A DNA stretch of 64,000 bases, from sequence record MW822008.1; one strand, written 5' to 3'. Position numbers and translations under genes: made by a program. The notes under the pieces are model-generated. The model was not told the DNA's origin. It did not search any database and saw nothing but the letters and a program-made list of their open reading frames with translations. Below, piece by piece: positions 44,015-62,746 of this stretch; positions within the stretch are counted from its first letter, which is position 1; the number at the start of each line of letters is the position of its first letter.

Positions 44015-44200
44015 ATTCCCTCTAACAGTATTCAGTACTACATGATAGTCTTCATCCTCCTAGGGTAACATAGTGAGGGCTATGATGGCAGTACTGAATA
44101 CTCCCTTTCAAAAGATAGATCTATGGTATAGTACTGACGGATTTTGGGCGTAGTTACCCTGGATGGATTTTGGACGTAGATATGTCTAGCCCTCCAGAAG

Positions 44201-44326
44201 TCTGGAAGTAAAGATGGCTATCCATCTAGACGGCTAAACGGCTAGATTTCTGGATGGCTAGATGGCTAGACGTTTGGACGGCTAAACGGCTAGATGGTTA
44301 CACGTCTGGAAGTATAGACGGCTAAA
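44201..44326 (+). repeat. degenerate 8-bp tandem repeat (GGCTARAY)
   Basis: GGCTA at 44216, 44232, 44240, 44256, 44264, 44280, 44288, 44320, all on an 8-bp lattice. Confidence 0.8.
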
Positions 44327-46850: not shown

Positions 46851-46914
46851 GCAGTTTACAAATCTTTACAATTGCCGGTATTGACTTATTTTGTCAGTAC
46901 TGGCATAATGTATT

Positions 46915-46960
46915 CATTGGCAGATAAGCCGTAGCCCATAGGGTGCGGGAGTGTATCTAT
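46915..46960 (+). ncRNA. putative short RNA unit, copy 4
   Basis: TTGACT-17-CATAAT, GGC-AGAUAA-GCC, CCCAUAGGGUGC. Confidence 0.45.
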
Positions 46961-46977
46961 AGAAAAAGTAGTTTATT

Positions 46978-47019: not shown

Positions 47020-47133
47020 GGTATATTATGCCAGTACTTGATAATGCTGTCAATACTTTTTTTACTATTCAGTACTGAAAACTATTTTTAAAAAGTACTT
47101 GCAAACTATGTTTAAAGGCGTATAATGTTTTAC

Positions 47134-47208
47134 ATCAGGACGGGGAACGAAATAAGTAACTCCCCGTTAAGTAGCCCAGGAGTAAGGCACACGAAAAACT
47201 CCCCTGAT
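47134..47208 (+). ncRNA. putative 75-nt structured RNA (three-way junction), copy A
   Basis: AUCAGG/CCUGAU closing stem, ACGGGGA/UCCCCGU, GGAGU/ACUCC; between tandem promoters. Confidence 0.5.
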
Positions 47209-47276
47209 AAAATAGTTTGACAAATGTTTTTAAAAGCGTATAATACTTACATCAACTACTGAATGAGGGTTACAAA

Positions 47277-47888
47277 ATGAAAACTATCACTACTACTACT
47301 TTCGTTATGGATTTTTCTGAATTGAACGCAGAACAAAAAACGTCAGCTATCGAACTGGTTCGGGAACGTGAAAAAAACTTAAACGATGATTATTTTTCTG
47401 AAAGTGAAATTGAATACTATAAAGAAACAGTACTACCGGAATATGGCATTAATGACGCTGATTTACGTTTCAGTGGCTTTTGGTCCCAGGGTGACGGTGC
47501 ATCAATCAGTACTGACCACGTTGACGCAGTGAAGTTTTTACGCAAGGTAAGAGCATTAACTAAGTATCGCTCAATCCGTCACTTGCTGAATGAAGATGAT
47601 TTGGCGATGAGTGTAAAGCGTTCTCACTCCCACTACTCGCATGAAAACACTGTAAGCGGGTACATTGAATCGGCTTACACTGATTTAACCGCAAAACAAG
47701 AAACGTTAGTTAATGAGCTTGAGGAACTACTCACTGAAACTATTCGTGAATTATCCCGCAAGTTGTACCGTGATTTAGAGAATGCATATGAGGATCAATT
47801 CACTACTGAAAACATTACGGCACTGATTGAGGGTAACGAATATCAATTCAATGTTATTGATGGCGTAGTAGAATCAATCGAATATTAA
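47277..47888 (+). CDS. conserved mobile-element early protein (FSGFWSQGDGA motif)
   Basis: motif seen directly; function unknown. Confidence 0.75.
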   Translation: MKTITTTTFVMDFSELNAEQKTSAIELVREREKNLNDDYFSESEIEYYKETVLPEYGINDADLRFSGFWSQGDGASISTDHVDAVKFLRKVRALTKYRSIRHLLNEDDLAMSVKRSHSHYSHENTVSGYIESAYTDLTAKQETLVNELEELLTETIRELSRKLYRDLENAYEDQFTTENITALIEGNEYQFNVIDGVVESIEY

Positions 47889-47979
47889 TTTAAAAAAGTA
47901 CTTGCAAACTAAGTTTAAAAGCGTATAATACTTTATATCGAGGCGGGGAGTGGTTCCCCGCTCAAACGAGGATTTAAAA

Positions 47980-48219
47980 ATGGCTAGTTCTAAAACTTAC
48001 AACGGGCACAAAAACAAAACTCAATGGAATGTAAGCCTTTGGATTAATAACGGTGAGTCATTGTATCGGCTTGCACAAAGTTGTATCGCACAAAGTAGAA
48101 CTAAAGATATTGCAGCGGAATGTATGTACCGCAGATTAAAAGCCAACGGTACTACTACAACGCCGGACGGTTTTAAGTATAGCACTACTGCGATCCGTGC
48201 TGCAATGGTTGGAATGTAA
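47980..48219 (+). CDS. early protein, GHKN..WNVSLWINN family
   Basis: paralogue of 45940. Confidence 0.8.
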   Translation: MASSKTYNGHKNKTQWNVSLWINNGESLYRLAQSCIAQSRTKDIAAECMYRRLKANGTTTTPDGFKYSTTAIRAAMVGM

Positions 48220-48276
48220 TATTCAGTACTGAGATAATGGCGGGTAATAGTTCCCGCCTTTACTGAGGGTTATCTA

Positions 48277-48537
48277 ATGAGTAAAGTAATAAAGTACAAT
48301 GTGTTAAGCAAATCATTGTCTATCAGTGAATGCACCGATGGTTTTTGGATGTACGATGAAACGCGTGGCATGAATTTAGCTATGCGTGCAAAAACTGCTG
48401 AGGCGGCGTATATTCAAGCACTGGAATACTACCAGGAACGTTTAAAGGAAGTAGAAGAAGATTATAAAAGCCTCAAAGCGAAAGTAGATCATTTCGTCGG
48501 TCAATTCATCGAGGAAGACGACGACAAACAATATTGA
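48277..48537 (+). CDS. conserved phage hypothetical protein
   Basis: GFWMYDETRGMNLAMRAKT, coiled-coil tail. Confidence 0.75.
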   Translation: MSKVIKYNVLSKSLSISECTDGFWMYDETRGMNLAMRAKTAEAAYIQALEYYQERLKEVEEDYKSLKAKVDHFVGQFIEEDDDKQY

Positions 48538-48623
48538 AAAAGTACTTGCAATTAGTTTTCAGTACTGTATAATGGTTTACATCAAAGGGAGAAATGGTTC
48601 TCCCTGGTAATGAGGAAAATAAA

Positions 48624-48845
48624 ATGGCTAATATCACTACTCTTTCCCAACTGGAAGCACTGGTTAAATCTATGCGGGAACATGCCGACAAAATCGGCGT
48701 ACAAGATCCAGCCGTTTGCTTCTGCGACGAATTGAATGATGATACCCTGGTAATAGCAGAAGTCCAGGACGTTTCTAACTATTCATCGCGTTACACTGGC
48801 GGCGTAGCAAATAAAGGTGACTTCTGTTTATACCTTACAAAATAA
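48624..48845 (+). CDS. early hypothetical protein
   Basis: GAGG RBS before 48624. Confidence 0.75.
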   Translation: MANITTLSQLEALVKSMREHADKIGVQDPAVCFCDELNDDTLVIAEVQDVSNYSSRYTGGVANKGDFCLYLTK

Positions 48846-48902
48846 CAACGCGGGGAGATAATAACTCCCCGTTACTTTTTCAGTACTGAATCATTTAATA
48901 GA

Positions 48903-48946
48903 CGGATCTATGCACCCGGTGGGTTAGTGACTGTTTCGTCTTGATG
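48903..48946 (-). ncRNA. putative short RNA unit, copy 6
   Basis: TTGACA-17-CATAAT on - strand, GAC-GAAACA-GUC, CCCACCGGGUGCA. Confidence 0.45.
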
Positions 48947-49088
48947 TAGTAATTATGCCAGTACTGGATGCACTTGTCAACAACTATTTTTCAAATACTT
49001 TTTATTAAAATACTTGCAATTAGTTTTTAAACGCGTATAATGTTTTGCATAGGGGGAGCGGTTCCCCTGGTAACTAAGGAATAATAAA

Positions 49089-49325
49089 ATGCTTGAACAA
49101 ATCAAATCAACGTCTTCGAATGTAACGGGAACGGTAGCACACTTTACTAGTGATGAATCGCGGGGCGTTCCCTATTGTGCTGTACATGTAAACACTGAGG
49201 GTAACTACTGGTTTACGGTTTACGGATCATATTCATTTGGACGGCCAGGGCATCAAAAAATTCTGGATAAAGTACAACCAACGGGTAAAAATATCACTGC
49301 TGAAATGTTTTATAAAAAATCATAA
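49089..49325 (+). CDS. early hypothetical protein
   Basis: AAGGA RBS, own promoter. Confidence 0.75.
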   Translation: MLEQIKSTSSNVTGTVAHFTSDESRGVPYCAVHVNTEGNYWFTVYGSYSFGRPGHQKILDKVQPTGKNITAEMFYKKS

Positions 49326-49409
49326 AGTACTTGATAATAGTTTTTAGTACTGTATAATATTTTACATCGCAAGGGGGAGCGGTTCCCCCTGGTAACTAAG
49401 GATAATCAA

Positions 49410-49709
49410 ATGAAAATTGCAATCATCGCCCTGGCTTTATCTGTTTCCTCTTTCGCTGTTAATGCGTCATTAGATGTAAGTAGTGAAAAATTCATTCAGT
49501 GCACTGTTGCAATGACCGATGAAAGTACTGGCGAGATTGTTTTAAAGGATTTAGAGATCCAGCCGGAAGCATTTAAAAACGGGCCGTTCCATGAAGAAGA
49601 CGAAAAAGGTAGCACGACAATTTATTACGATGCAAGTACTAAACGCGGTTCGGTCACTGTTATGGATACTGAGAAAGTAACTCATACTGGCGTTATTAAT
49701 TGCCGTTGA
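49410..49709 (+). CDS. early secreted protein
   Basis: signal peptide, Cys pair. Confidence 0.75.
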   Translation: MKIAIIALALSVSSFAVNASLDVSSEKFIQCTVAMTDESTGEIVLKDLEIQPEAFKNGPFHEEDEKGSTTIYYDASTKRGSVTVMDTEKVTHTGVINCR

Positions 49710-49730
49710 TATATACTACGGGGTAACATC

Positions 49731-49961
49731 ATGACTAAGCGAATTGTTTTACTTAACGAAAGCAGTACTACACAACTACTTAACGCCGTGCATTATGATA
49801 TTGAAACGAGCGTTAATCTTATCAGTACTGTAGTACTGTTGGACACTGGAAAGGTCGCCAATGATAAAGCGATTGCAGGTATACTAACGGATCTTGAGCC
49901 TGGTAGCAGTGCATCAATAACGTTAAATGGTAAAGTGTTTAACATTTTACTTACTGATTAA
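49731..49961 (+). CDS. early hypothetical protein
   Basis: followed by terminator AGCCCAC-CTG-GTGGGCT-T7. Confidence 0.7.
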   Translation: MTKRIVLLNESSTTQLLNAVHYDIETSVNLISTVVLLDTGKVANDKAIAGILTDLEPGSSASITLNGKVFNILLTD

Positions 49962-50078
49962 GTACATAGCCCACCTGGTGGGCTTTTTTGTTTTTGTAGT
50001 ATCGTAGTACTGAGATACTTTGAAAATAGTTTTAAAAAAGTAGTTGACATTACCGCAGAAAAGCGTAGAATGTATTAC

Positions 50079-50151
50079 ATCAAGACGGGGAGCACTAAGT
50101 AGACCGCCAGTAAGTCGAACGAAAAACTGGACACGTCGAGAAAACTTTGAT
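50079..50151 (+). ncRNA. putative structured RNA, divergent copy C
   Basis: CCAGU/ACUGG replaces GGAGU/ACUCC around the same 14-nt AAG..ACGAAAA loop. Confidence 0.45.
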
Positions 50152-50194
50152 ACACTAATAAACGTAAACTAAACTTTAATTGAGGATTTATAAA

Positions 50195-50677
50195 ATGGCT
50201 AATGTAAAATCATTCATCAAAGCACTGGTAGCAAATGAAACTAACGTCGCGGCTGAGATCCTGGCTGAACTGGATAACGATACCATGAAAGCGGTACGCA
50301 ATAATTTTAACATCGCGTACAGTACTGCGAAAGAACTACAAGCAAATAAAGCGGCAGAAATTGAAGCGGCAAAGGCGGCCCGTGAAGCAGAACTACAAGC
50401 AACAATCGAAAGTATTCAGGCGGCAGTAGTTGGATTGGATCTGGAAGTAGTTACAGAGATGGCACAAAAAGCCCTGGCGGTTAAGTATGGGGAAGACAAG
50501 CCAGAAGTAAAAGCCAAAAAATGGATTCAGGAACGCGTAGCGGTAGTACTGGACAACGGGGAAGAATATCTGATTCCGGTGCGTGGTAACTGCATTGCGG
50601 TAGTACTGGACGCGATTAACTCCAGTGGTATGACTCGCGAGGAATGGATCGAAGCTCATCGCAAAGTTGAAGCATAA
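50195..50677 (+). CDS. H-NS-like nucleoid protein
   Basis: coiled-coil AAEIE region and C-domain DNGE....RGN.IAVV.DA...SG.T.EEW aligns with H-NS DENGE...[11 protein letters not shown]...GKSLDDF. Confidence 0.6.
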   Translation: MANVKSFIKALVANETNVAAEILAELDNDTMKAVRNNFNIAYSTAKELQANKAAEIEAAKAAREAELQATIESIQAAVVGLDLEVVTEMAQKALAVKYGEDKPEVKAKKWIQERVAVVLDNGEEYLIPVRGNCIAVVLDAINSSGMTREEWIEAHRKVEA

Positions 50678-50698
50678 CAATTAAAGTACTGAATCACT

Positions 50699-50724
50699 AG
50701 CCCACTTATACAGTGGGCTTTTTT
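50699..50724 (+). terminator. intrinsic terminator
   Basis: AGCCCACT-tatac-AGTGGGCT-T5. Confidence 0.8.
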
Positions 50725-50743
50725 GTGTTTATCGTTTACCAGG

Positions 50744-50813
50744 CCACCAGCACCGCCTAGAAACGATTCTAACGCATTAAACTGATTATCTGATGCATCA
50801 CCCTAGCTGGTGG
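50744..50813. other. inverted pair of Chi sites
   Basis: CCACCAGC 50744, GCTGGTGG 50806, intergenic. Confidence 0.7.
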
Positions 50814-50961
50814 CGTTAAGGTCGTTAGAATGCGATTGAGTGCGTTTAAAGTATTTTACAAAAAGTAATAAAAAGTACTTGCACGATTAAGAGATTAGCG
50901 TATAATGTTTTACATCGAGAGGGGGAAACGGTTCTCCTTCCAAATCAAAGGAATCAAAACA

Positions 50962-51189
50962 ATGGCTATTATCATTACTCGCGTATCTGGTACTACTGGC
51001 AACGAACAAGTAGTTGCAGTCATTACCAACAAGGAAGGTGCGGAATTGCAAAATGCAATGAATACCTGGGCCGTTAATGAGTTCGGTCAGTGGGCAAGTG
51101 TAGCATACATTGAAACCTATCAAGTGCCGTCGATTAGTTTAACTGATTTGGGCGTTGAGCGTATCCTTTGCCTTGATGAATTAAATTAA
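50962..51189 (+). CDS. early hypothetical protein
   Basis: AAGGA RBS before 50962. Confidence 0.75.
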   Translation: MAIIITRVSGTTGNEQVVAVITNKEGAELQNAMNTWAVNEFGQWASVAYIETYQVPSISLTDLGVERILCLDELN

Positions 51190-51275
51190 AAAAGTACTTG
51201 CAAAGTAAATCGAATAAAGTATAATACATTACATCAAGGGGAGAAAATGGTTCTCCCCACTACAAGGAAACTAAA

Positions 51276-51419
51276 ATGAAAACTTGTCAATGTGGTCAGA
51301 AATCTATTACGGGTTTAAAGCGGGGCGTTGCTCTTTGCCAGTACCATTATAATTTACAAGTATGGGGTAAAGAATGGGCCGACCAGGTGGAAGCAGCAAA
51401 GAAAGCAAAAAGTAAGTAA
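51276..51419 (+). CDS. 47-aa Zn-finger-like micro-protein (not in track)
   Basis: CQC...CQYH; own promoter and RBS. Confidence 0.65.
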   Translation: MKTCQCGQKSITGLKRGVALCQYHYNLQVWGKEWADQVEAAKKAKSK

Positions 51420-51498
51420 AAATATTATCACAGTACTATTGACATAGTTTGATAGTACTGGCATAATAGATTTTATCAAGACGACTAAGGAAAACAAA

Positions 51499-51711
51499 AT
51501 GGCTATCATTACAAAAATCAAAGTAAACAAATCACTGGTTAAACTTGAACAAGTGAAAGCAGGTTATAAAGTATCGTGGTGCGGTATGTATCGGATGTTC
51601 GCAGATATTGATGAAGCGATCAATTATTACAGCGACACGGTTAAAAACTTTGTTCGTGCTGATGTGGTTATGGCAGTGGCAGCACATAAAGCAGCGAAAG
51701 AAAGTAAGTAA
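51499..51711 (+). CDS. early hypothetical protein
   Basis: MAII family, similar to 54613. Confidence 0.75.
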   Translation: MAIITKIKVNKSLVKLEQVKAGYKVSWCGMYRMFADIDEAINYYSDTVKNFVRADVVMAVAAHKAAKESK

Positions 51712-51800
51712 AAATATTATCACAGTACTATTGACATAGTTTGATAGTACTGGCATAATAGATTTTATCAAGACAACATATTAATTTAAGGAATACAAAA

Positions 51801-52124
51801 ATGGCTAAAACTATCATTAACACCGTTTCCCTGGCTGCAATCCGTGCAATCAATGTTGACGGTAAACGTTGGACTGATTCATATGGCAATACTTATCATT
51901 CTTGTCATGTAAGCGTTGAACTGGATAACGGTTTGAATGATCTGGCGGTTGAATCATTTACTTATGGCTATGAAGATGCATATCAACAAACGGCGTTAGA
52001 TCTCTTAAAGGAATCAGTAGACGGGCTTAATACTGATGAAACCTCCCTTACTCGTTTGTGCAATGATCTTAATATCCCGTTGCATTGTACTGTACAGAAT
52101 GTTAAACGCAAAAAAGATCTTTAA
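51801..52124 (+). CDS. early protein, RWTDS.GNTYHS family
   Basis: paralogue of 58219. Confidence 0.8.
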   Translation: MAKTIINTVSLAAIRAINVDGKRWTDSYGNTYHSCHVSVELDNGLNDLAVESFTYGYEDAYQQTALDLLKESVDGLNTDETSLTRLCNDLNIPLHCTVQNVKRKKDL

Positions 52125-52204
52125 TTAGCTTTACTTTATGCAGATACTTTGATATAGTGTCTGCATAGGGGAAAGAAATTAAATTAACTTAAGAGGATCG
52201 TATA

Positions 52205-52474
52205 ATGAAAAATATCAGTACTTTAATCGATGCAGGTACACATGTTCGGCGGTCTATGGTTGCAACCAGTACTACAAAACAAGTAGCGAGCGGTTATCTT
52301 GTATTTGTGCACGATGGTAAACTCCTGGAACGTTCAATCAATTTTGATGTTAAAAACAATTGCCGTTTTATTATCTTTAAGCGTGAACAATATAAAATTG
52401 ATTTACCAGCGAAGCCCATAAGCGGGGCGTACAACGTGCAATCATTGTTTGAGCGTCAACCTTACACCTATTAA
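52205..52474 (+). CDS. early hypothetical protein
   Basis: GAGGA RBS. Confidence 0.7.
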   Translation: MKNISTLIDAGTHVRRSMVATSTTKQVASGYLVFVHDGKLLERSINFDVKNNCRFIIFKREQYKIDLPAKPISGAYNVQSLFERQPYTY

Positions 52475-52525
52475 TCAAAACATCGTTAGCGGTCGTTTAA
52501 GGCCGCTTATATTGGGGATTATACC

Positions 52526-52798
52526 ATGAACGTTAATCAAGTACTGAATGAGATCGAAAGCATCATTAAACCGATGAAGCGTACTGATGCTATGTTAACA
52601 CCGGAAGAAAGCCGCCTATATGAGCGTTACAGCGTCGAACAAGTCCAGGCAATGGCTATGGCTACGCCAGCCGTTAAACCGCCTGAGAATGCGTTACAGG
52701 ACGTTACAGGGGATTATATCATTAATCCAGTACTAGGGAAGATGCCGCCAATCACCGAAGAACAAAAAGACTATTTGAGTCAGTACTTAAAAGGTTAA
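52526..52798 (+). CDS. early hypothetical protein
   Basis: GGGGA RBS. Confidence 0.7.
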   Translation: MNVNQVLNEIESIIKPMKRTDAMLTPEESRLYERYSVEQVQAMAMATPAVKPPENALQDVTGDYIINPVLGKMPPITEEQKDYLSQYLKG

Positions 52799-52803
52799 TT
52801 AAT

Positions 52804-53013
52804 ATGCTTACTGTACAGGATAAGATCGACATCTTAAAGGTTAATATGTATGTGATTGATGCCGTACCTGGTAAAGTATTTGCATACGATGATTCTAATC
52901 GCAGTCCTTTCTATTGTAGTCATGTAGTTGGATACGTGCCGTTGGCGTATGTTATCGAAAGAGTGGTTGATGCAGCATACAATCATTTTTTAGAAAATAA
53001 TACTTGCAATTAG
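52804..53013 (+). CDS. early hypothetical protein
   Basis: operon context. Confidence 0.65.
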   Translation: MLTVQDKIDILKVNMYVIDAVPGKVFAYDDSNRSPFYCSHVVGYVPLAYVIERVVDAAYNHFLENNTCN

Positions 53014-53082
53014 TTTTTAAACGCGTATAATGTTTTACATGAAGGGGAGAAATGATTCTCCCCACTAATTAAGGAATATGAA

Positions 53083-53229
53083 ATGAAAGCATCAAAAAAG
53101 AGTAATACCAAGAAAGCATGTTCACCTTTCGCTGGGGTATTCCCTTTACGTTTCGTTGATGAAGTGGTTTCCTACCCGCTGGGCCTTACTCCTGAGATGG
53201 TAGAAAGTTTGCGTAAATCTAAAAAATAA
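53083..53229 (+). CDS. 48-aa early protein (not in track)
   Basis: own promoter, AAGGA RBS. Confidence 0.6.
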   Translation: MKASKKSNTKKACSPFAGVFPLRFVDEVVSYPLGLTPEMVESLRKSKK

Positions 53230-53310
53230 TACTTGCAATTAGTTTTCAGTACTGTATAATAGTTTACATGAAGGGGAGAAATGATTCTCCCCAATAACAG
53301 GAGAAACAAA

Positions 53311-53463
53311 ATGAAACAATACAACGCTCGGTTTGATGTTACTATCGGCAACGGCAAAGGTCAATTCTCTTTCAGTACTCGCCGCAGTTATACAGAAAAC
53401 TTCCTGCGAAATTGTGCACTGACCGCCGCACAAATTAAACATTACTTCCAGGCTAAAAAATGA
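53311..53463 (+). CDS. 50-aa early protein
   Basis: AGGAG RBS before 53311. Confidence 0.65.
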   Translation: MKQYNARFDVTIGNGKGQFSFSTRRSYTENFLRNCALTAAQIKHYFQAKK

Positions 53464-53549
53464 AATCATTAGCTTATTACAGTTCGGCGGTGATCGGTGC
53501 ATTGATCGCGGCATTGTTAGTAACCTATCTATTCTTTATGGTGATTTAA
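53460..53549 (+). CDS. 29-aa single-TM peptide (not in track)
   Basis: ATGA coupling, hydrophobic. Confidence 0.5.
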   Translation: MKSLAYYSSAVIGALIAALLVTYLFFMVI

Positions 53550-53669
53550 ATGAATCCTAACGGTTTAATTTACAGTACTACTAAAACGAAAGCAGATAAA
53601 GCGAAAGTAAAGGAGTACATTAAGCAAGGCATGACGCGAAAGGCGGCAGTACTGAAAGCTAAAAAATAA
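53550..53669 (+). CDS. 39-aa basic peptide (not in track)
   Basis: coupled start, fills gap to terminator. Confidence 0.5.
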   Translation: MNPNGLIYSTTKTKADKAKVKEYIKQGMTRKAAVLKAKK

Positions 53670-53679
53670 ATGAAAAAAG

Positions 53680-53711
53680 TGGTTGACTTCGGTCAGCCAT
53701 TTTGCTATTAT
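53680..53711 (+). promoter_or_regulatory. fused terminator / sigma70 promoter driving RNA unit
   Basis: TGGTTGAC-TTCG-GTCAGCCA; TTGACT-17-TATTAT. Confidence 0.75.
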
Positions 53712-53716
53712 ATATT

Positions 53717-53762
53717 CATTGAGAGATAGCTCACTAGCCCACCGGGTGCATAAGTGTATCTA
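53717..53762 (+). ncRNA. putative short RNA unit, copy 7
   Basis: UGAG-AGAUAG-CUCA, CCCACCGGGUGCA-UAAG-UGUAUCU. Confidence 0.45.
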
Positions 53763-53883
53763 TTATATAAGTATTGAGTACTGAGAACTATTTTTAAAAA
53801 GTACTTGCAAACTATCTCAATTGGCGTATAATGTTTTACATCGAGAGGGGGAACGGTTTCCCCTGGTAATAAGGAAACGAATC

Positions 53884-54225
53884 ATGACTATCTCAATTGC
53901 TCAATCTAACTTTGAAAATGAAATCATCGCCCAGGCACTGCGTTTAAATGATGGTCGGGCCGAAATTAATTACGGTTTCAATTCAGGCGGTTGTGAAAAC
54001 TATCAGTACTTTGTAACTGCTGATGGCGGTGTCCTGGGCATCAATACCGTTATTGTAAACATTCAGAAAATTAATTTCAATGATCCAGACGATAGCCAGT
54101 TTTACATTGTAGGCGTAGACGTGAACTATGAGGATGACTCACTAACTGATGATCACACTGGCGAGAAGTTAGAAAGTGCATACGGTGAAGATGATTATCA
54201 GTCCGGTCCAGAAGATTTTGAATAA
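53884..54225 (+). CDS. conserved acidic phage protein
   Basis: VNYED..L.DDHTGE.LESAYG motif. Confidence 0.75.
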   Translation: MTISIAQSNFENEIIAQALRLNDGRAEINYGFNSGGCENYQYFVTADGGVLGINTVIVNIQKINFNDPDDSQFYIVGVDVNYEDDSLTDDHTGEKLESAYGEDDYQSGPEDFE

Positions 54226-54316
54226 TATTAAAAAATAGTTTGACAATAGATTATAGTACTGTATAATAAGTTACATCAAGGGGAGAATAGTTCTCCCCAC
54301 TAACAGAGAAAACAAA

Positions 54317-54529
54317 ATGGCTAATATCTGCACTGTACTGAAAAATGCAAAACAAGTTTTATTTTCTGACCACGATTATTTTAATAAAGATATTACAGGC
54401 GTTCGGAATATCAAAGATGTAAAAAGTGTTATGGGTATCTATTGCAATATGAAACGTGTTGGAACGTTCGGCGACAAAGTACTATACCAGGCAGGGGATT
54501 ACAATTTTACACTGACTATCATTAACTAA
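54317..54529 (+). CDS. early hypothetical protein
   Basis: own promoter. Confidence 0.7.
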   Translation: MANICTVLKNAKQVLFSDHDYFNKDITGVRNIKDVKSVMGIYCNMKRVGTFGDKVLYQAGDYNFTLTIIN

Positions 54530-54612
54530 AAATATTATCACAGTACTATTGACATAGTTTGATAGTACTGACATAATAACTTTTATCAACTACACTACTA
54601 AGGAATTAAAAA

Positions 54613-54792
54613 ATGGCTATCATCGCAAAAACTGAAATCGTTGGTCTGGATTCTATCATCATGACGTTTGAAGATCAAAAAGGTATGTATGTAGTTTCAT
54701 ATGGTGATTATGTTCGGGAGTATGAAACGGTAGACGAAGCCTTTGAAAGTTATATTCGCCAGGTGAATAAAGCATACGACGACTACCGCTAA
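54613..54792 (+). CDS. 59-aa early protein (not in track)
   Basis: MAIIAKTEI; promoter nearly identical to that of 51499. Confidence 0.7.
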   Translation: MAIIAKTEIVGLDSIIMTFEDQKGMYVVSYGDYVREYETVDEAFESYIRQVNKAYDDYR

Positions 54793-54891
54793 AATATATT
54801 ACCAGTACTATTAAAGTTATTGACATAGTTTGATAGTACTGTATAATAAGTTTTATAAACAGTAGTTAACTTAACCTAAGAGAGAAATAAA

Positions 54892-55035
54892 ATGATCGCA
54901 CTGGATTCATTCATCGACGCAGTACTGGCAAAAACTGGCGAGGATCTGACCGCAGAACAATACGCGATGATCGAGCAATGTCAGCAAAACGGTAAATCGG
55001 TGAAAGATACTGTTAAGATTATCCGCAAGATGTAA
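54892..55035 (+). CDS. 47-aa early protein (not in track)
   Basis: own promoter; terminator with Chi at 55057 follows. Confidence 0.65.
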   Translation: MIALDSFIDAVLAKTGEDLTAEQYAMIEQCQQNGKSVKDTVKIIRKM

Positions 55036-55140
55036 GATTATAGCCCACTGGTTAACGCTGGTGGGCTTTAATCCTTTACCCTATACAATGTCAGTACTAA
55101 ACCGTTTATCTCATTAGAATGCGTTACAGGACGTTTGACA

Positions 55141-55338
55141 ATGATTAGCATGAAATCAGTACAAAAACAAATAGAAACATTATCAAAAATTAAACGTAAA
55201 CAGTACTCGTTAGAATATACAATCAATGGTAACTATCATCTAATGAAAGAGAATAATTTTATCGTCATTGATGAATCATTGCAAGTTATTAGTATAGTAC
55301 TGAAAGCATTAATTAATGATAGAAAAAAATTAAAATAA
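55141..55338 (+). CDS. hypothetical protein
   Basis: weak RBS. Confidence 0.5.
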   Translation: MISMKSVQKQIETLSKIKRKQYSLEYTINGNYHLMKENNFIVIDESLQVISIVLKALINDRKKLK

Positions 55339-55376
55339 TCTATTGACAATATCCTCCAGTACTGGCATAATACTTA

Positions 55377-55424
55377 CATCAAGACGAGAACGTCACTAAC
55401 CCATAGGGTGCACAAATGTAACTG
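55377..55424 (+). ncRNA. putative short RNA unit, copy 8
   Basis: TTGACA-17-CATAAT, GACG-AGAA-CGUC, CCCAUAGGGUGCA. Confidence 0.45.
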
Positions 55425-55669
55425 TATAATATTGATCAAAAAATGATCTGATCAATACTTGATCAATTTGCGTAAAGTAGTATAATTCTATGCAGTTGGT
55501 TAGACGAAAGGTTATGATTAGTAGTGCAAGTGTATAAAAATTTTCATGGTGTATCGTTCCGCACATATGGCAATGAATATGTGGTATCATGTGGATTGGA
55601 AAAAGTAAGAACAAGTAATATTATTGTCGCATTACAGTACTATAGTATTTTTATAATGAGGTTAAAATA

Positions 55670-55927
55670 ATGGCTGTAGGATTCGCGAAAGATGGGGCCG
55701 AACAAGACGAGATTAACGCAGTGATTCAGGCCGCCGTTAACCACGCTAGAAAGCAAATTAACGCACAAATAGAATCACTGATACATTGCCTCGACTGCGG
55801 CGATATAATCCCTGAGAAACGACGCCAGGCCGTTAAGGGATGTAAGTACTGCATAACTTGCCAGGAGGATCATGATAGTACTTTTAAACGTCCCCCGCGT
55901 AATTGTTGGCATAGATCTATGAGATAA
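55670..55927 (+). CDS. TraR/DksA C4-type zinc-finger protein (YbiI-like)
   Basis: MAVGFAKDG..QD N-terminus; CLDCG..IPE.RR.AV.GC.YC..CQ. Confidence 0.85.
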   Translation: MAVGFAKDGAEQDEINAVIQAAVNHARKQINAQIESLIHCLDCGDIIPEKRRQAVKGCKYCITCQEDHDSTFKRPPRNCWHRSMR

Positions 55928-56002
55928 AAAGTATTGACAGTACTATCCAGTAGTGTTATAGTACTTACATCAAGGGGAAACATCTTCCCCTACTAAGAGG
56001 AA

Positions 56003-56197
56003 ATGAAAATGGAAAACTTATCAAGTATTTTAGTACAAGATGATTTCGGTAATCCTGGAAGTGCTATCATTGTTCGGGGTAATAAAGCAACATTTGTTAT
56101 TGCTGGTGGACCTGTACAGCGTAGCATTAAAAACAATGCCGTTACTATTAATAATGTACGCTATCGCTTAGATAAAGAATTGATTCATAAACTGTAA
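56003..56197 (+). CDS. early hypothetical protein
   Basis: own promoter; contains Chi at 56102. Confidence 0.7.
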   Translation: MKMENLSSILVQDDFGNPGSAIIVRGNKATFVIAGGPVQRSIKNNAVTINNVRYRLDKELIHKL

Positions 56198-56224
56198 TAT
56201 TAATTTAATAGAGGATAACAATAA

Positions 56225-56548
56225 ATGTACATTCATACTACTATCACAAAGGAAGTCCGTTGCCAGTTCGAAAGTATTCCGGGCGTATGTTTCATCACTG
56301 GTACGTTTTCCCCTGGTGATCGTGATAATCCAGTACTGTTACAATTACGCCATCCATCATGGGATAAAGCATTTGATCTACCGTTGAATGAATTCGCAAC
56401 TACTGCTGAAAAGTACATTAAAAATATTCGCGAGAATGATCGACTATTCATTAATGCTTTCAGTGATTCCGCGTTAAGCGAGATCCACAGCGTATTGGTT
56501 GCAATCATGGAATCAATGGAGAAAACTAAATTCAAACAAGGTGAATAA
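56225..56548 (+). CDS. early hypothetical protein
   Basis: GAGGA RBS. Confidence 0.75.
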   Translation: MYIHTTITKEVRCQFESIPGVCFITGTFSPGDRDNPVLLQLRHPSWDKAFDLPLNEFATTAEKYIKNIRENDRLFINAFSDSALSEIHSVLVAIMESMEKTKFKQGE

Positions 56549-56631
56549 AAACTATTGACAAGATAATCTAGTACTGTATAATAAGTTACATGAAGGGGAG
56601 AAATGATTCTCCCCACTGAGAGGAAAGAAAA

Positions 56632-56844
56632 ATGCAAGGTCAACTAATCGTTCGTAAATGGTCTGATACTAACGCTAAACCGTGGGATGTACAATACATC
56701 GGACCGGATGGGGTATCACGTTATCAGCCTGGCGTAACGCATAGTACTGAGCAATATGCCGCCGCTCACCGCGAACGCCTGTTAGAATCCATGAAACAGG
56801 GATACGGTGAAAAATTCATTCAAGATCATTGGCTGAAAGATTAA
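56632..56844 (+). CDS. early hypothetical protein
   Basis: own promoter, GAGGA RBS. Confidence 0.75.
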   Translation: MQGQLIVRKWSDTNAKPWDVQYIGPDGVSRYQPGVTHSTEQYAAAHRERLLESMKQGYGEKFIQDHWLKD

Positions 56845-56861
56845 TATAAGGAGTACAGCTT

Positions 56862-56954
56862 ATGCAAATGAATCCGATGATTATTGTGTTAGCTGTACTT
56901 ATGATCATTCATGCAATAGTAAAAGTATTAACGCAATCAGGAGTAATAAAATGA
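56862..56954 (+). CDS. 30-aa TM peptide (not in track)
   Basis: AAGGAG RBS. Confidence 0.55.
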   Translation: MQMNPMIIVLAVLMIIHAIVKVLTQSGVIK

Positions 56955-57124
56955 TTCAAGTAGAATTATCAGTACTGAAAGATCTGTTTTATCGGTTAGG
57001 TACTACTGGCGAGTATCCTAAAAGTGATACCGCAAAACTTTTTGTATCACTCGACTTATGGCAACGCGAACAATTAGTAATGTCCTGGCGTAAAGGTAAA
57101 GCAGATAGCGAGGTGAAAGCATGA
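56951..57124 (+). CDS. 57-aa protein (not in track)
   Basis: AGGAG RBS, ATGA overlap. Confidence 0.6.
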   Translation: MIQVELSVLKDLFYRLGTTGEYPKSDTAKLFVSLDLWQREQLVMSWRKGKADSEVKA

Positions 57125-57270
57125 AAGAATTCTTATTCGAAGTAGTGTTTCAAGGTGTCGGTAGTAACCAACTGATTCGCTCAAGTGGTTATAATGTTAA
57201 CCAGGCATGGAATAACATTAAACAAATGTACCCGAACGCTATCACCTATCGCAACCCGAAAGAAGTTTAA
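57121..57270 (+). CDS. 49-aa protein (not in track)
   Basis: GAGGTG RBS, ATGA overlap. Confidence 0.6.
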   Translation: MKEFLFEVVFQGVGSNQLIRSSGYNVNQAWNNIKQMYPNAITYRNPKEV

Positions 57271-57283
57271 AAATATTTGAAAA

Positions 57284-57317
57284 AGGGATTGACTCCGGTC
57301 AGTCCCTTTGCTATTAT
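57284..57317 (+). promoter_or_regulatory. fused terminator / sigma70 promoter driving RNA unit
   Basis: GGGATTGAC-TCCG-GTCAGTCCC; TTGACT-17-TATTAT. Confidence 0.75.
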
Positions 57318-57322
57318 ATACG

Positions 57323-57363
57323 CATAGAAACAAATCAGCCCACAGGGTGCATAAATGTATCTA
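57323..57363 (+). ncRNA. putative short RNA unit, copy 9
   Basis: AGAAA, CCCACAGGGUGCA-UAAA-UGUAUCU; Chi at 57370 follows. Confidence 0.45.
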
Positions 57364-57443
57364 TTGTTTGCTGGTGGCTAGTACTGAAAACTATTTTTAA
57401 AAAAGTACTTGCATTGTACTTAGAATCAAGTATAATGTTTTAC

Positions 57444-57516
57444 ATCAGGACGGGGAACGAAACAAGTAACCCCGTTAAGTAGTCCAGGAGTAAGACATAA
57501 GAAAACCTCCCCTGAT
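57444..57516 (+). ncRNA. putative structured RNA, copy B
   Basis: same three stems as 47134-47208 with loop substitutions. Confidence 0.5.
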
Positions 57517-57585
57517 AAAATAGTTTGACAATAGAAAGTAAACGAGTATAATACTTACATCAACCACTGATAAGGAAACATTAAA

Positions 57586-57861
57586 ATGCGGATTCTACTG
57601 ACAGCTAACGAAATCGAACAAGTACTGACTACTAACCTGGAAGACTGGAAACGTGAAGCAGATATCCAGGCGGTTCAACTGCTTAACGATAAGTTAACGC
57701 CGGATGACTTAAGCAAGATTGTAGATCCTCAATTCTACGAAGATATCCACGACACCGCGTTAAGCGTCGAGGATGTACTAGATAAGCACTACATTGATAT
57801 TGATTTGCAGGTTTACGGTCGTAAAAACTTTATCACTATTCACGACATTTATAATAATTAA
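57586..57861 (+). CDS. acidic early protein
   Basis: AAGGA RBS. Confidence 0.75.
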   Translation: MRILLTANEIEQVLTTNLEDWKREADIQAVQLLNDKLTPDDLSKIVDPQFYEDIHDTALSVEDVLDKHYIDIDLQVYGRKNFITIHDIYNN

Positions 57862-60538: not shown

Positions 60539-60552
60539 AAAAGATTAAAAAA

Positions 60553-60585
60553 GGGATTGATTTCGGTCAGTCCCTTTGCTATTAT
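60553..60585 (+). promoter_or_regulatory. fused terminator / sigma70 promoter driving RNA unit
   Basis: GGGATTGAT-TTCG-GTCAGTCCC; TTGATT-17-TATTAT. Confidence 0.7.
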
Positions 60586-60590
60586 ATATT

Positions 60591-60636
60591 CATTGAGAGA
60601 TAGCTCACTGACCCACAGGGTGCATAAATGTATCTA
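60591..60636 (+). ncRNA. putative short RNA unit, copy 10
   Basis: near-duplicate of copy 7; CCCACAGGGUGCA. Confidence 0.45.
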
Positions 60637-60761
60637 TTATATAAGTATTCAGTACTGAAAACTATTTTTAAAAAGTACTTGCATTGTACTTAGAATCAAG
60701 TATAATGTTTTATATCGAGAGGGGGGGAACGGTTCTCCCTCAAAGAATAAGGAATAAAATC

Positions 60762-62246: not shown

Positions 62247-62504
62247 ATGGAACAATTCACACAATATCGGGTAAATCCTCAAGCTATGGCCTACGTAGAA
62301 GACCATAAAACGTTACCAGTACTGCAACCAGTTAAAGGCCATATCTATCGTGCAATGTCGTGGAGTACGGCCCAGGATGGCTATAAAACCGTAGCCGTTG
62401 GTATGTACTGCGGTAATGGTGAATGGTTTGATCCAAATAATCCGGTAGCCATTGACAGTACTGAAAAAATGAAATGGGCCGACTACATCGAAGATATTTC
62501 ATAA
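62247..62504 (+). CDS. early hypothetical protein
   Basis: own promoter. Confidence 0.75.
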   Translation: MEQFTQYRVNPQAMAYVEDHKTLPVLQPVKGHIYRAMSWSTAQDGYKTVAVGMYCGNGEWFDPNNPVAIDSTEKMKWADYIEDIS

Positions 62505-62519
62505 AAAGAATAAAAAAAA

Positions 62520-62552
62520 GGAGTTGACTTCGGTCCGCTCCTTTAGTACTAT
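62520..62552 (+). promoter_or_regulatory. fused terminator / sigma70 promoter driving RNA unit
   Basis: GGAGTTGAC-TTCG-GTCCGCTCC; TTGACT-17-TACTAT. Confidence 0.7.
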
Positions 62553-62557
62553 ATACG

Positions 62558-62598
62558 CATAGAAACAAATCAGCCCACAGGGTGCATAAGTGTATCCA
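62558..62598 (+). ncRNA. putative short RNA unit, copy 11
   Basis: near-duplicate of copy 9; Chi at 62632 follows. Confidence 0.45.
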
Positions 62599-62746
62599 AA
62601 ATATATAGTTAATAACGGTGAGTAACTATCTGCTGGTGGAACTAAAACTATTAATAAAAAAGTATTGACAAAGTATATCAGTACTGCAATAATGTATCTC
62701 GTAGGGCGGCAATGGTGCGACGGCCCACAAAGTTAGGAGATTCAAA

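Follow-up and report, generated by a model that had tools for sequence, protein, structure and literature searches.

A conserved pseudoknot element in early leaders of an Asteriusvirus jumbo coliphage, phage T7 and other virulent phages of Enterobacterales

Few phages have been studied as thoroughly as bacteriophage T7, whose A1 leader serves as a standard template for transcription and is severed by RNase III ahead of gene 0.3. In H-type pseudoknots, an A-rich third loop (L3) is typical of minor-groove triples. The ToxI antitoxins also are small H-type pseudoknots with A-minor loops (PMC8860590), and, stripped of its flanks, the ToxI core pseudoknot fails to bind ToxN (PMC8860590). We analyzed a 64,000-nucleotide stretch of sequence record MW822008.1 (the window, to which all coordinates refer unless another record is named), and describe in it an RNA element present in three copies, termed A, B, and C. 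The core of this element is predicted to be an H-type pseudoknot of ~37 nt, in which a linker GUAGxC pairs with Gx'C(N)UAC of a 14-nt loop. Its counterpart in T7, a conserved double-pseudoknot domain on the evidence of sequence comparison, lies between the A1 and A2 promoters.

The window had earlier been read, from its letters alone, as harboring a structured RNA family in three copies (the original prediction), and both the family's location in leaders and the positions of the copies were borne out. A covariance model, R1, built on 25 distinct homologues and applied to both strands of the 64 kb, gave exactly three matches (47164-47206, 57472-57514, and 50092-50134) with scores of 48-55 bits, the next best match scoring 7 bits, and a motif search of the window returned 3 matches vs. 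0.13 expected. The copies are isolated, 2.9 and 7.4 kb apart, with one per leader; copies A and C are ~86% alike. By the definition of the family, stem S1 is formed by GUAGxC and Gx'C(N)UAC with x and x' complementary, S2 is a second helix, and L3 reads GAAAA; all three copies possess S1 and S2 of this T7-type early-leader pseudoknot. Together with a closing helix and a hairpin termed H1, the parts are arranged as follows.

47134-47208, + strand: element A, with closing helix 47134-47139/47203-47208 and H1 47140-47146/47161-47167
Element A pseudoknot: S1 47171-47176/47186-47192 with bulged A47189; S2 47179-47183/47198-47202; A-rich loop L3 47193-47197
50079-50151, + strand: element B, without H1, with outer helix 50079-50083/50147-50151 and inner GACG 50084-50087/CGUC 50134-50137
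Element B pseudoknot: S1 50099-50104/50114-50120; S2 50107-50111/50126-50130; L3 50121-50125
57444-57516, + strand: element C, with closing helix 57444-57449/57511-57516 and H1 57450-57455/57470-57475
Element C pseudoknot: S1 57479-57484/57494-57500; S2 57487-57490/57507-57510; L3 57501-57506

Each copy very probably forms the domain at the 5' terminus of an early host sigma-70 polymerase transcript, in which a closing helix surrounds an optional hairpin and the pseudoknot. The minimum-energy folds of copies A and C are the three-way junction that had been drawn for them, composed of the closing helix, H1, and a second hairpin (z -2.9 and -2.3, respectively). The same junction had been proposed for copy B, and there it fails: the fold is not better than that of shuffled sequences (z -0.2), only the 5' nucleotides and the 3' half are held in common with A and C, the 3' arm of H1 is deleted, and just AUCAA/UUGAU, GACG/CGUC, and the pseudoknot are retained. 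Copy B does have CCAGU/ACUGG in place of GGAGU/ACUCC, as originally predicted, and retains the conserved loop. Of the parts originally taken to be single-stranded, the UAAGUAG linker pairs with the AAG-N4-ACGAAAA loop in S1, and the repeated UAAG and GAAA motifs, which had been likened to those of a multi-site sponge, belong to the pseudoknot and are not exposed.

The stems drawn originally, and the pseudoknot that had not been drawn, are both confirmed by covariation. The core comprises S1 (GUAGxC with Gx'C(A)UAC), an S2 of 4-7 bp and free sequence, and an A-rich L3, GAAAA(A); its loop lengths (0-2 nt for L1, 0-4 nt for L2, and 5-6 nt for L3) fit a classical H-type pseudoknot. Across the 25 distinct cores, 94.9% of cells pair, compared to 81% for shuffled and 20-38% for slid alignments. 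The S1 pair x-x', which was not imposed by any search pattern, is A-U in 17 cores, C-G in 4, and U-A in 4, and is unpaired in none. This pair has switched repeatedly, being A-U in the T7/T3-like phages but U-A in loci L017 and L243, U-A in a Klebsiella-phage-like clade but C-G in L206, L237, and L199, and C-G in window copy A vs. U-A in the counterparts that precede the same gene in phages 121Q and UE-S1. Another S1 pair varies as C-G, U-G, and U-A, and mismatches affect the third S1 pair (A-U) in roughly one quarter of the sequences. S2 occurs as at least 10 unrelated sequences, e.g., CCUG/CAGG, CCAG/CUGG, GGAG/CUCC, CAACC/GGUUG, and CUUAGC/GUUAAG. In the four helices of 21 T7-like sequences, 11 of the 21 pairs have changed on both sides (shuffled mean 2.6; none of 500 shuffles reached 11), and the presence of G-U pairs assigns the fold to the transcribed strand. 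The unpaired nucleotides UAA, UAAG, and GAAAA are strongly conserved over unrelated phages; model R1 missed the Klebsiella-phage-like variant, which is without UAAG in L2 and was recovered by eye and with a regular expression. In the element C copy of phage CMSTMSU (L149, 9443-9477), a record flagged as unverified, part of the S2 5' arm is lost, which may be due to sequencing errors.

A closing helix was found in every type of the element. It is AUCAGG/CCUGAU in types A and C, and AUCAA/UUGAU both in type B and in a B-like copy of phage EJP2, the S2 of which is CCUG/CAGG vs. CCAG/CUGG in window copy B. In fENko and L052, a closing GCGGC pairs with GYCGM and is accompanied by an H1 of their own, and the LIMEzero-like phages use a CGAAG-type strand with UUUCG. 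In the T7-like phages, a hairpin upstream contributes its loop, GUCAA, which pairs with UUGAC immediately 3' of S2, and this pairing of loop and flank covaries (GAUUAG/CUAAUC, GUCGGU/ACCGAC, GUCAUC/GAUGAC, GUCAC/GUGAC, and GUUAC/GUAAC). The closing helices are short and their per-sequence duplex energies are not individually significant; the case rests on covariation. Two sets of facts speak against the structure as presented: the x-x' pair is broken by a C.A mismatch in EmilieFrey and L217, and the A/C-type closing helix is invariant, as is most of H1 apart from a single G-U, so that these two helices rest on energy and on the comparison between types.

Judging from its sequence, the window covers the terminal-repeat early region of an Asteriusvirus jumbo coliphage. 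Segment 46900-47300 (401 bases compared), which lies inside the long direct terminal repeat and a few kb from the end of the genome, shows 100% identity to Escherichia phage BF17 and 97-99% identity to ~30 other Asteriusvirus jumbo phages. The region 43.7-63 kb is dense in sigma-70-type early promoters with a small gene behind each, and a short G+C-rich 5' hairpin follows most of them. Copies A and C had been placed between two promoters, and a P1 promoter and a perfect-consensus P2 promoter were indeed located on their two sides.

47099-47126, + strand: promoter P1 of copy A, TTGCAA-16-TATAAT, predicted start A47134
47217-47244, + strand: promoter P2 of copy A, 12/12 consensus, followed by an open reading frame (ORF) at 47277-47888 (203 aa)
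50044-50071, + strand: promoter P1 of copy B, TTGACA-16-TAGAAT, predicted start A50079, with ORF 50195-50677 after the element
57409-57436, + strand: promoter P1 of copy C, TTGCAT-16-TATAAT, predicted start A57444
57525-57552, + strand: promoter P2 of copy C, 12/12 consensus, followed by ORF 57586-57861 (91 aa)

The second promoter of copy B is weak (9/12 consensus matches). The P1 starts were placed with the 7-nt spacing of T7 A1, and since the predicted start is the first A of AUCAGG, the element would constitute the very 5' end of the transcript, with nucleotide +1 paired; this nucleotide is paired in types A, B, and C. No terminator-like site was found between the element and the ORF after any of the three copies, which points to a 5' leader domain rather than the stand-alone, terminated small RNA that had been offered as one option. 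One metatranscriptome contig covers the element, P2, and the start of the ORF, although as an assembled contig it has neither ends nor strand and is weak evidence; in one metatranscriptome the depth is ~1 upstream of P1 vs. 20-30 over the element, a step that weakly suggests transcription of the element. The proteins encoded downstream of the copies gave no informative Pfam or PHROG match. The gene after copy B, previously described as H-NS-like, has no H-NS domain in Pfam and belongs to a PHROG family without an assigned function. The P2 promoter and 91-aa gene behind copy C are near-identical in Justusliebigvirus muut (window 57517-57861 vs. L003 1574-1918), which indicates a recent swap of a leader-promoter-gene cassette between unrelated phage groups.

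Beyond the Asteriusvirus group, a match to copy B was found at the left end of Yersinia phages of the T7 group. In T7 itself (NC_001604, ~531-595), the element consists of UAAGUAGAC, an S2 hairpin CCUG/CAGG, and the loop AUAAGUCGCACGAAAAA, situated between A1 (498) and A2 (626); it begins at +34 behind another 5' hairpin, its core ends 3 nt before the A2 -35 hexamer, and there is one copy per genome. The phiA1122 version and copy B share 32 of 35 positions, and of the three that differ, two form one compensatory pair. By pattern scans of viral contigs and BLAST, the core was detected in 484 T7-like records, one copy in each, where any feature listed under the match is at most a "hypothetical protein" call. 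It is also present in LIMEzero-like phages, in the jumbo phages fENko-Kae01/Munch and Hallingskeid, and in a 366-kb contig, and, at 91-93% identity to copy A, in Justusliebigvirus muut, outra, and EmilieFrey and in the Vequintavirinae-annotated A73, W70, A5-4, and A7_1. In A7_1, neither the two flanking promoters nor the downstream gene are the same, and the RNA element alone is conserved; across these phages, five different genes follow the element. Of 80 T7-like loci that were anchored on the RNA polymerase gene, independently of the motif, 65 had the pseudoknot and 12 had neither it nor a boxA in the first 5.2 kb, where the left end may be missing. In all groups, the element is 5'-proximal in a host-polymerase early leader, with the pseudoknot starting at +21 to +57, and the next strong promoter follows 0-55 nt beyond it, except in the LIMEzero-likes, which have a boxA instead; in most T7-likes, the A2 -35 hexamer doubles as the 3' strand of one helix. 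The occurrence of the same core in the T7 A1 leader and in unrelated virulent phage groups identifies it, at the level of sequence, as a conserved, horizontally shared RNA module of several such groups infecting Enterobacterales. Its recurrence in jumbo, ~145 kb, and LIMEzero-like phages that share little but the host group points to a common host target or a shared problem of early, host-driven transcription.

Searches with Rfam 15 gave no gathering-level match in the window, nothing relevant at E up to 1 for the T7, muut, LIMEzero-like, and jumbo loci, and at E up to 10 a sole, weak match of copy A to the Lnt RNA family (13.5 bits, E 7.5); a tRNA/tmRNA scan found none. The motif is absent from 5,426 complete E. 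coli genomes, and a scan of 185,579 bacterial species genomes yielded 15 matches, of which one is real, on a 2.7-kb contig of a metagenome-assembled genome, where the copy scores identically to those of T3-like phages. Mimicry of a host RNA was rejected on these grounds. In the literature searched, the T7 sequence appears only within template or construct sequences and not as an RNA element, and searches on pseudoknot, boxA, leader, and Asteriusvirus returned nothing relevant and no paper describing the element.

With regard to function, we consider it quite possible, if somewhat short of an even chance, that the element is a horizontally shared, host-directed RNA device for takeover by virulent enterobacterial phages, T7 included, that binds a conserved host machine such as the polymerase exit region, Rho, a Nus factor, an RNase, or a defence sensor. 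If so, it would act in the first seconds of infection, ahead of any phage protein, and the T7 early leader would gain a function not yet described. As to how it works, we tentatively and weakly favor an action in cis on host RNA polymerase or on the fate of the transcript, because the element is made by the host polymerase, is 5'-proximal, is not tied to particular genes, is conserved across phages of one host group, is split from the message by RNase III in T7, and is accompanied by a boxA in Autographiviridae. The nascent RNA would stay tethered to the polymerase that made it and could raise the processivity or Rho resistance of early transcription, as put or nut leader signals do, and the sequestered 5' end might also protect the leader. 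Since the RNase III cut precedes gene 0.3, the T7 element cannot act on translation of the mRNA. An rrn-type boxA lies 15-390 nt downstream of the element in Autographiviridae and ~15-25 nt downstream in LIMEzero-likes; the sequence CGCUCUUUAACAA is seen downstream of the pseudoknot at L001 433-445 (T7), L029 4167, and L119 5448. Several findings count against an action in cis. No boxA (GCUCUUUAACAA) occurs on the + strand of the window early region (5 weak matches vs. 7.7 expected), none was found in the other non-Autographiviridae loci, including those of jumbo phages, and 3 of the 80 anchored T7-like leaders have a boxA yet lack the pseudoknot. Moreover, with only 3 of ~40 early promoters in the window bearing the element, and in short leaders (~115-145 nt), there is no obvious requirement for antitermination. 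The role of the element can be tested directly with T7 genetics and transcription in vitro.

Two close rivals of the cis-acting explanation are a trans-acting decoy and a purely structural leader. As a decoy, this abundant early leader would, whole or as a processed fragment, titrate a conserved host protein or a defence nuclease, which we regard as unlikely. The unpaired UAA, UAAG, and GAAAA are conserved in unrelated phages that have only the host group in common, the module is self-contained and moves independently of the flanking promoters and genes, and the T7 leader is freed by RNase III; these properties suit a decoy, but there is no terminator or defined 3' end behind the element. Titration of Hfq, as originally suggested, is not supported, given the absence of a terminator with a U tail and the pairing of the UAAGUAG and AAG motifs in S1. 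Nor is that of a ToxN-type RNase, the other proposed target: the ToxI pseudoknots are similar (PMC8860590), but the ToxI core alone does not bind ToxN (PMC8860590), the copies are single and isolated without tandem repeats, and nothing beyond the weak Lnt match came from Rfam. The flanks of the element are paired in the closing helix and ToxN sites in them are not conserved: GAAAU is restricted to copy A, as had been noted, where it is located in the H1 loop, and copy C has GAAAC and copy B none.

In the second rival explanation, the fold merely hides the 5' end from RppH and RNase E, keeps Rho from loading, and resists backtracking at the next strong promoter, while the conserved loop bases serve tertiary folding only. 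The pairing of nucleotide +1, the simple 5' hairpin that opens most other early transcripts of the window, the strong promoter 0-55 nt on (outside the LIMEzero-likes), and the A-rich L3 with its expected minor-groove triples agree with such a role. We nevertheless doubt it, since a simple hairpin would suffice, and does at most other early promoters, the T7 element lies at +34 behind another 5' hairpin, and the near-identity of the loops across phage families exceeds what stability requires.

A ligand-sensing aptamer that reports the physiological state of the host from within the early leader is very improbable. Size, H-type pseudoknot, A-rich 3' loop, closing helix, and invariant unpaired bases resemble those of small pseudoknot aptamers, but no Rfam riboswitch matches, no expression platform (a terminator or sequestered ribosome-binding site) is linked to the element, and the downstream genes differ. 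Least credible of all is a signal at the DNA level (an UP element or protein-binding site for the downstream promoter), for although one helix's 3' strand is the A2 -35 hexamer in most T7-likes and an A tract lies where the proximal UP subsite would be, compensatory changes affect four helices, the crossing ones of the pseudoknot included, G-U pairs become A-C mismatches on the opposite strand, and the distance to the next promoter ranges over 0-55 nt, the LIMEzero-likes having no such promoter.

Several further features of the early region were recorded. Between 45059 and 63160, a simple 5' hairpin stands behind most early promoters (many sites, e.g., 53841-53867), and the early transcripts often start with AUCGAGAGGG, the first ten nucleotides of the T7 A1 transcript, which itself opens with a 5' hairpin. 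In the promoters at 57282-57361, 53676-53773, 60550-60647, and 62504-62609, the -35 hexamer (TTGACT) lies within a 12-bp hairpin and the conserved motif CAGCCCACAGGGTGCAUAAAUGUAUC follows the promoter, and a further upstream promoter at 46881-46909 is followed by CAGCCCACAGGGTGCAUAAAUGUAUC at 46932-46970; with these, there are three tandem promoters ahead of genes A and C, like A1-A2-A3 of T7. Chi (GCTGGTGG) is enriched ~30-fold (17 sites in the window vs. 0.57 expected), 11 of the 17 sites lying between 43995 and 62639 in the terminal-repeat early region, 9 of these 11 on the + strand (e.g., 57370-57377), which suggests protection of linear ends from RecBCD. In fENko-Kae01 and Hallingskeid, GCTGGTGGC likewise lies upstream of the promoter that bears the pseudoknot. 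At 44164-44323, ~0.8 kb inside the point that matches BF17 position 1, a periodic series of 8-nt repeats (CTAGAYGG-like) may be a terminus or packaging-related array.

Among the known systems closest to the element is an unannotated stretch of the T7 A1 leader, which has a homologous core, likewise near the 5' end of an early transcript of the host polymerase and with a second strong promoter behind it. It differs in that the domain is closed by the upstream hairpin loop GUCAA and the 3' flank UUGAC (the A2 -35) rather than at the very 5' end, and T7, unlike the window, carries a single copy per genome with a downstream boxA. HK022 put, the lambda nut boxA/boxB, and the rrn boxB-boxA-boxC signals are likewise promoter-proximal structured RNAs in host-polymerase transcripts, and the Autographiviridae element shares its leader with an rrn-type boxA. 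Like put-type signals, copies A, B, and C are promoter-proximal, starting at +1; put, in contrast, consists of two plain stem-loops and not of a pseudoknot with a closing helix, and nut and rrn require a boxA, of which the window has none. The ompA-type 5' stem-loops and the simple 5' hairpins of this phage share the paired 5' end and the position at +1, but the element is a much more complex structure, with unpaired bases that are conserved from one phage family to another. ToxI antitoxins and their phage-borne pseudo-ToxI mimics resemble the element as small H-type pseudoknots with A-minor contacts, and such mimics are known in phages; ToxI, however, is organized as tandem 34-36 nt repeats with flanking ToxN sites beside toxN, whereas the copies described here are single, lack conserved sites, adjoin no toxN-like repeat locus, and have no model match. 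Finally, the preQ1, SAM-II, and guanidine-III aptamers resemble the element in size and overall architecture and in placing an A-rich strand in the groove of a helix, whereas the element matches no Rfam model, has no expression platform, and is not linked to a metabolic gene.

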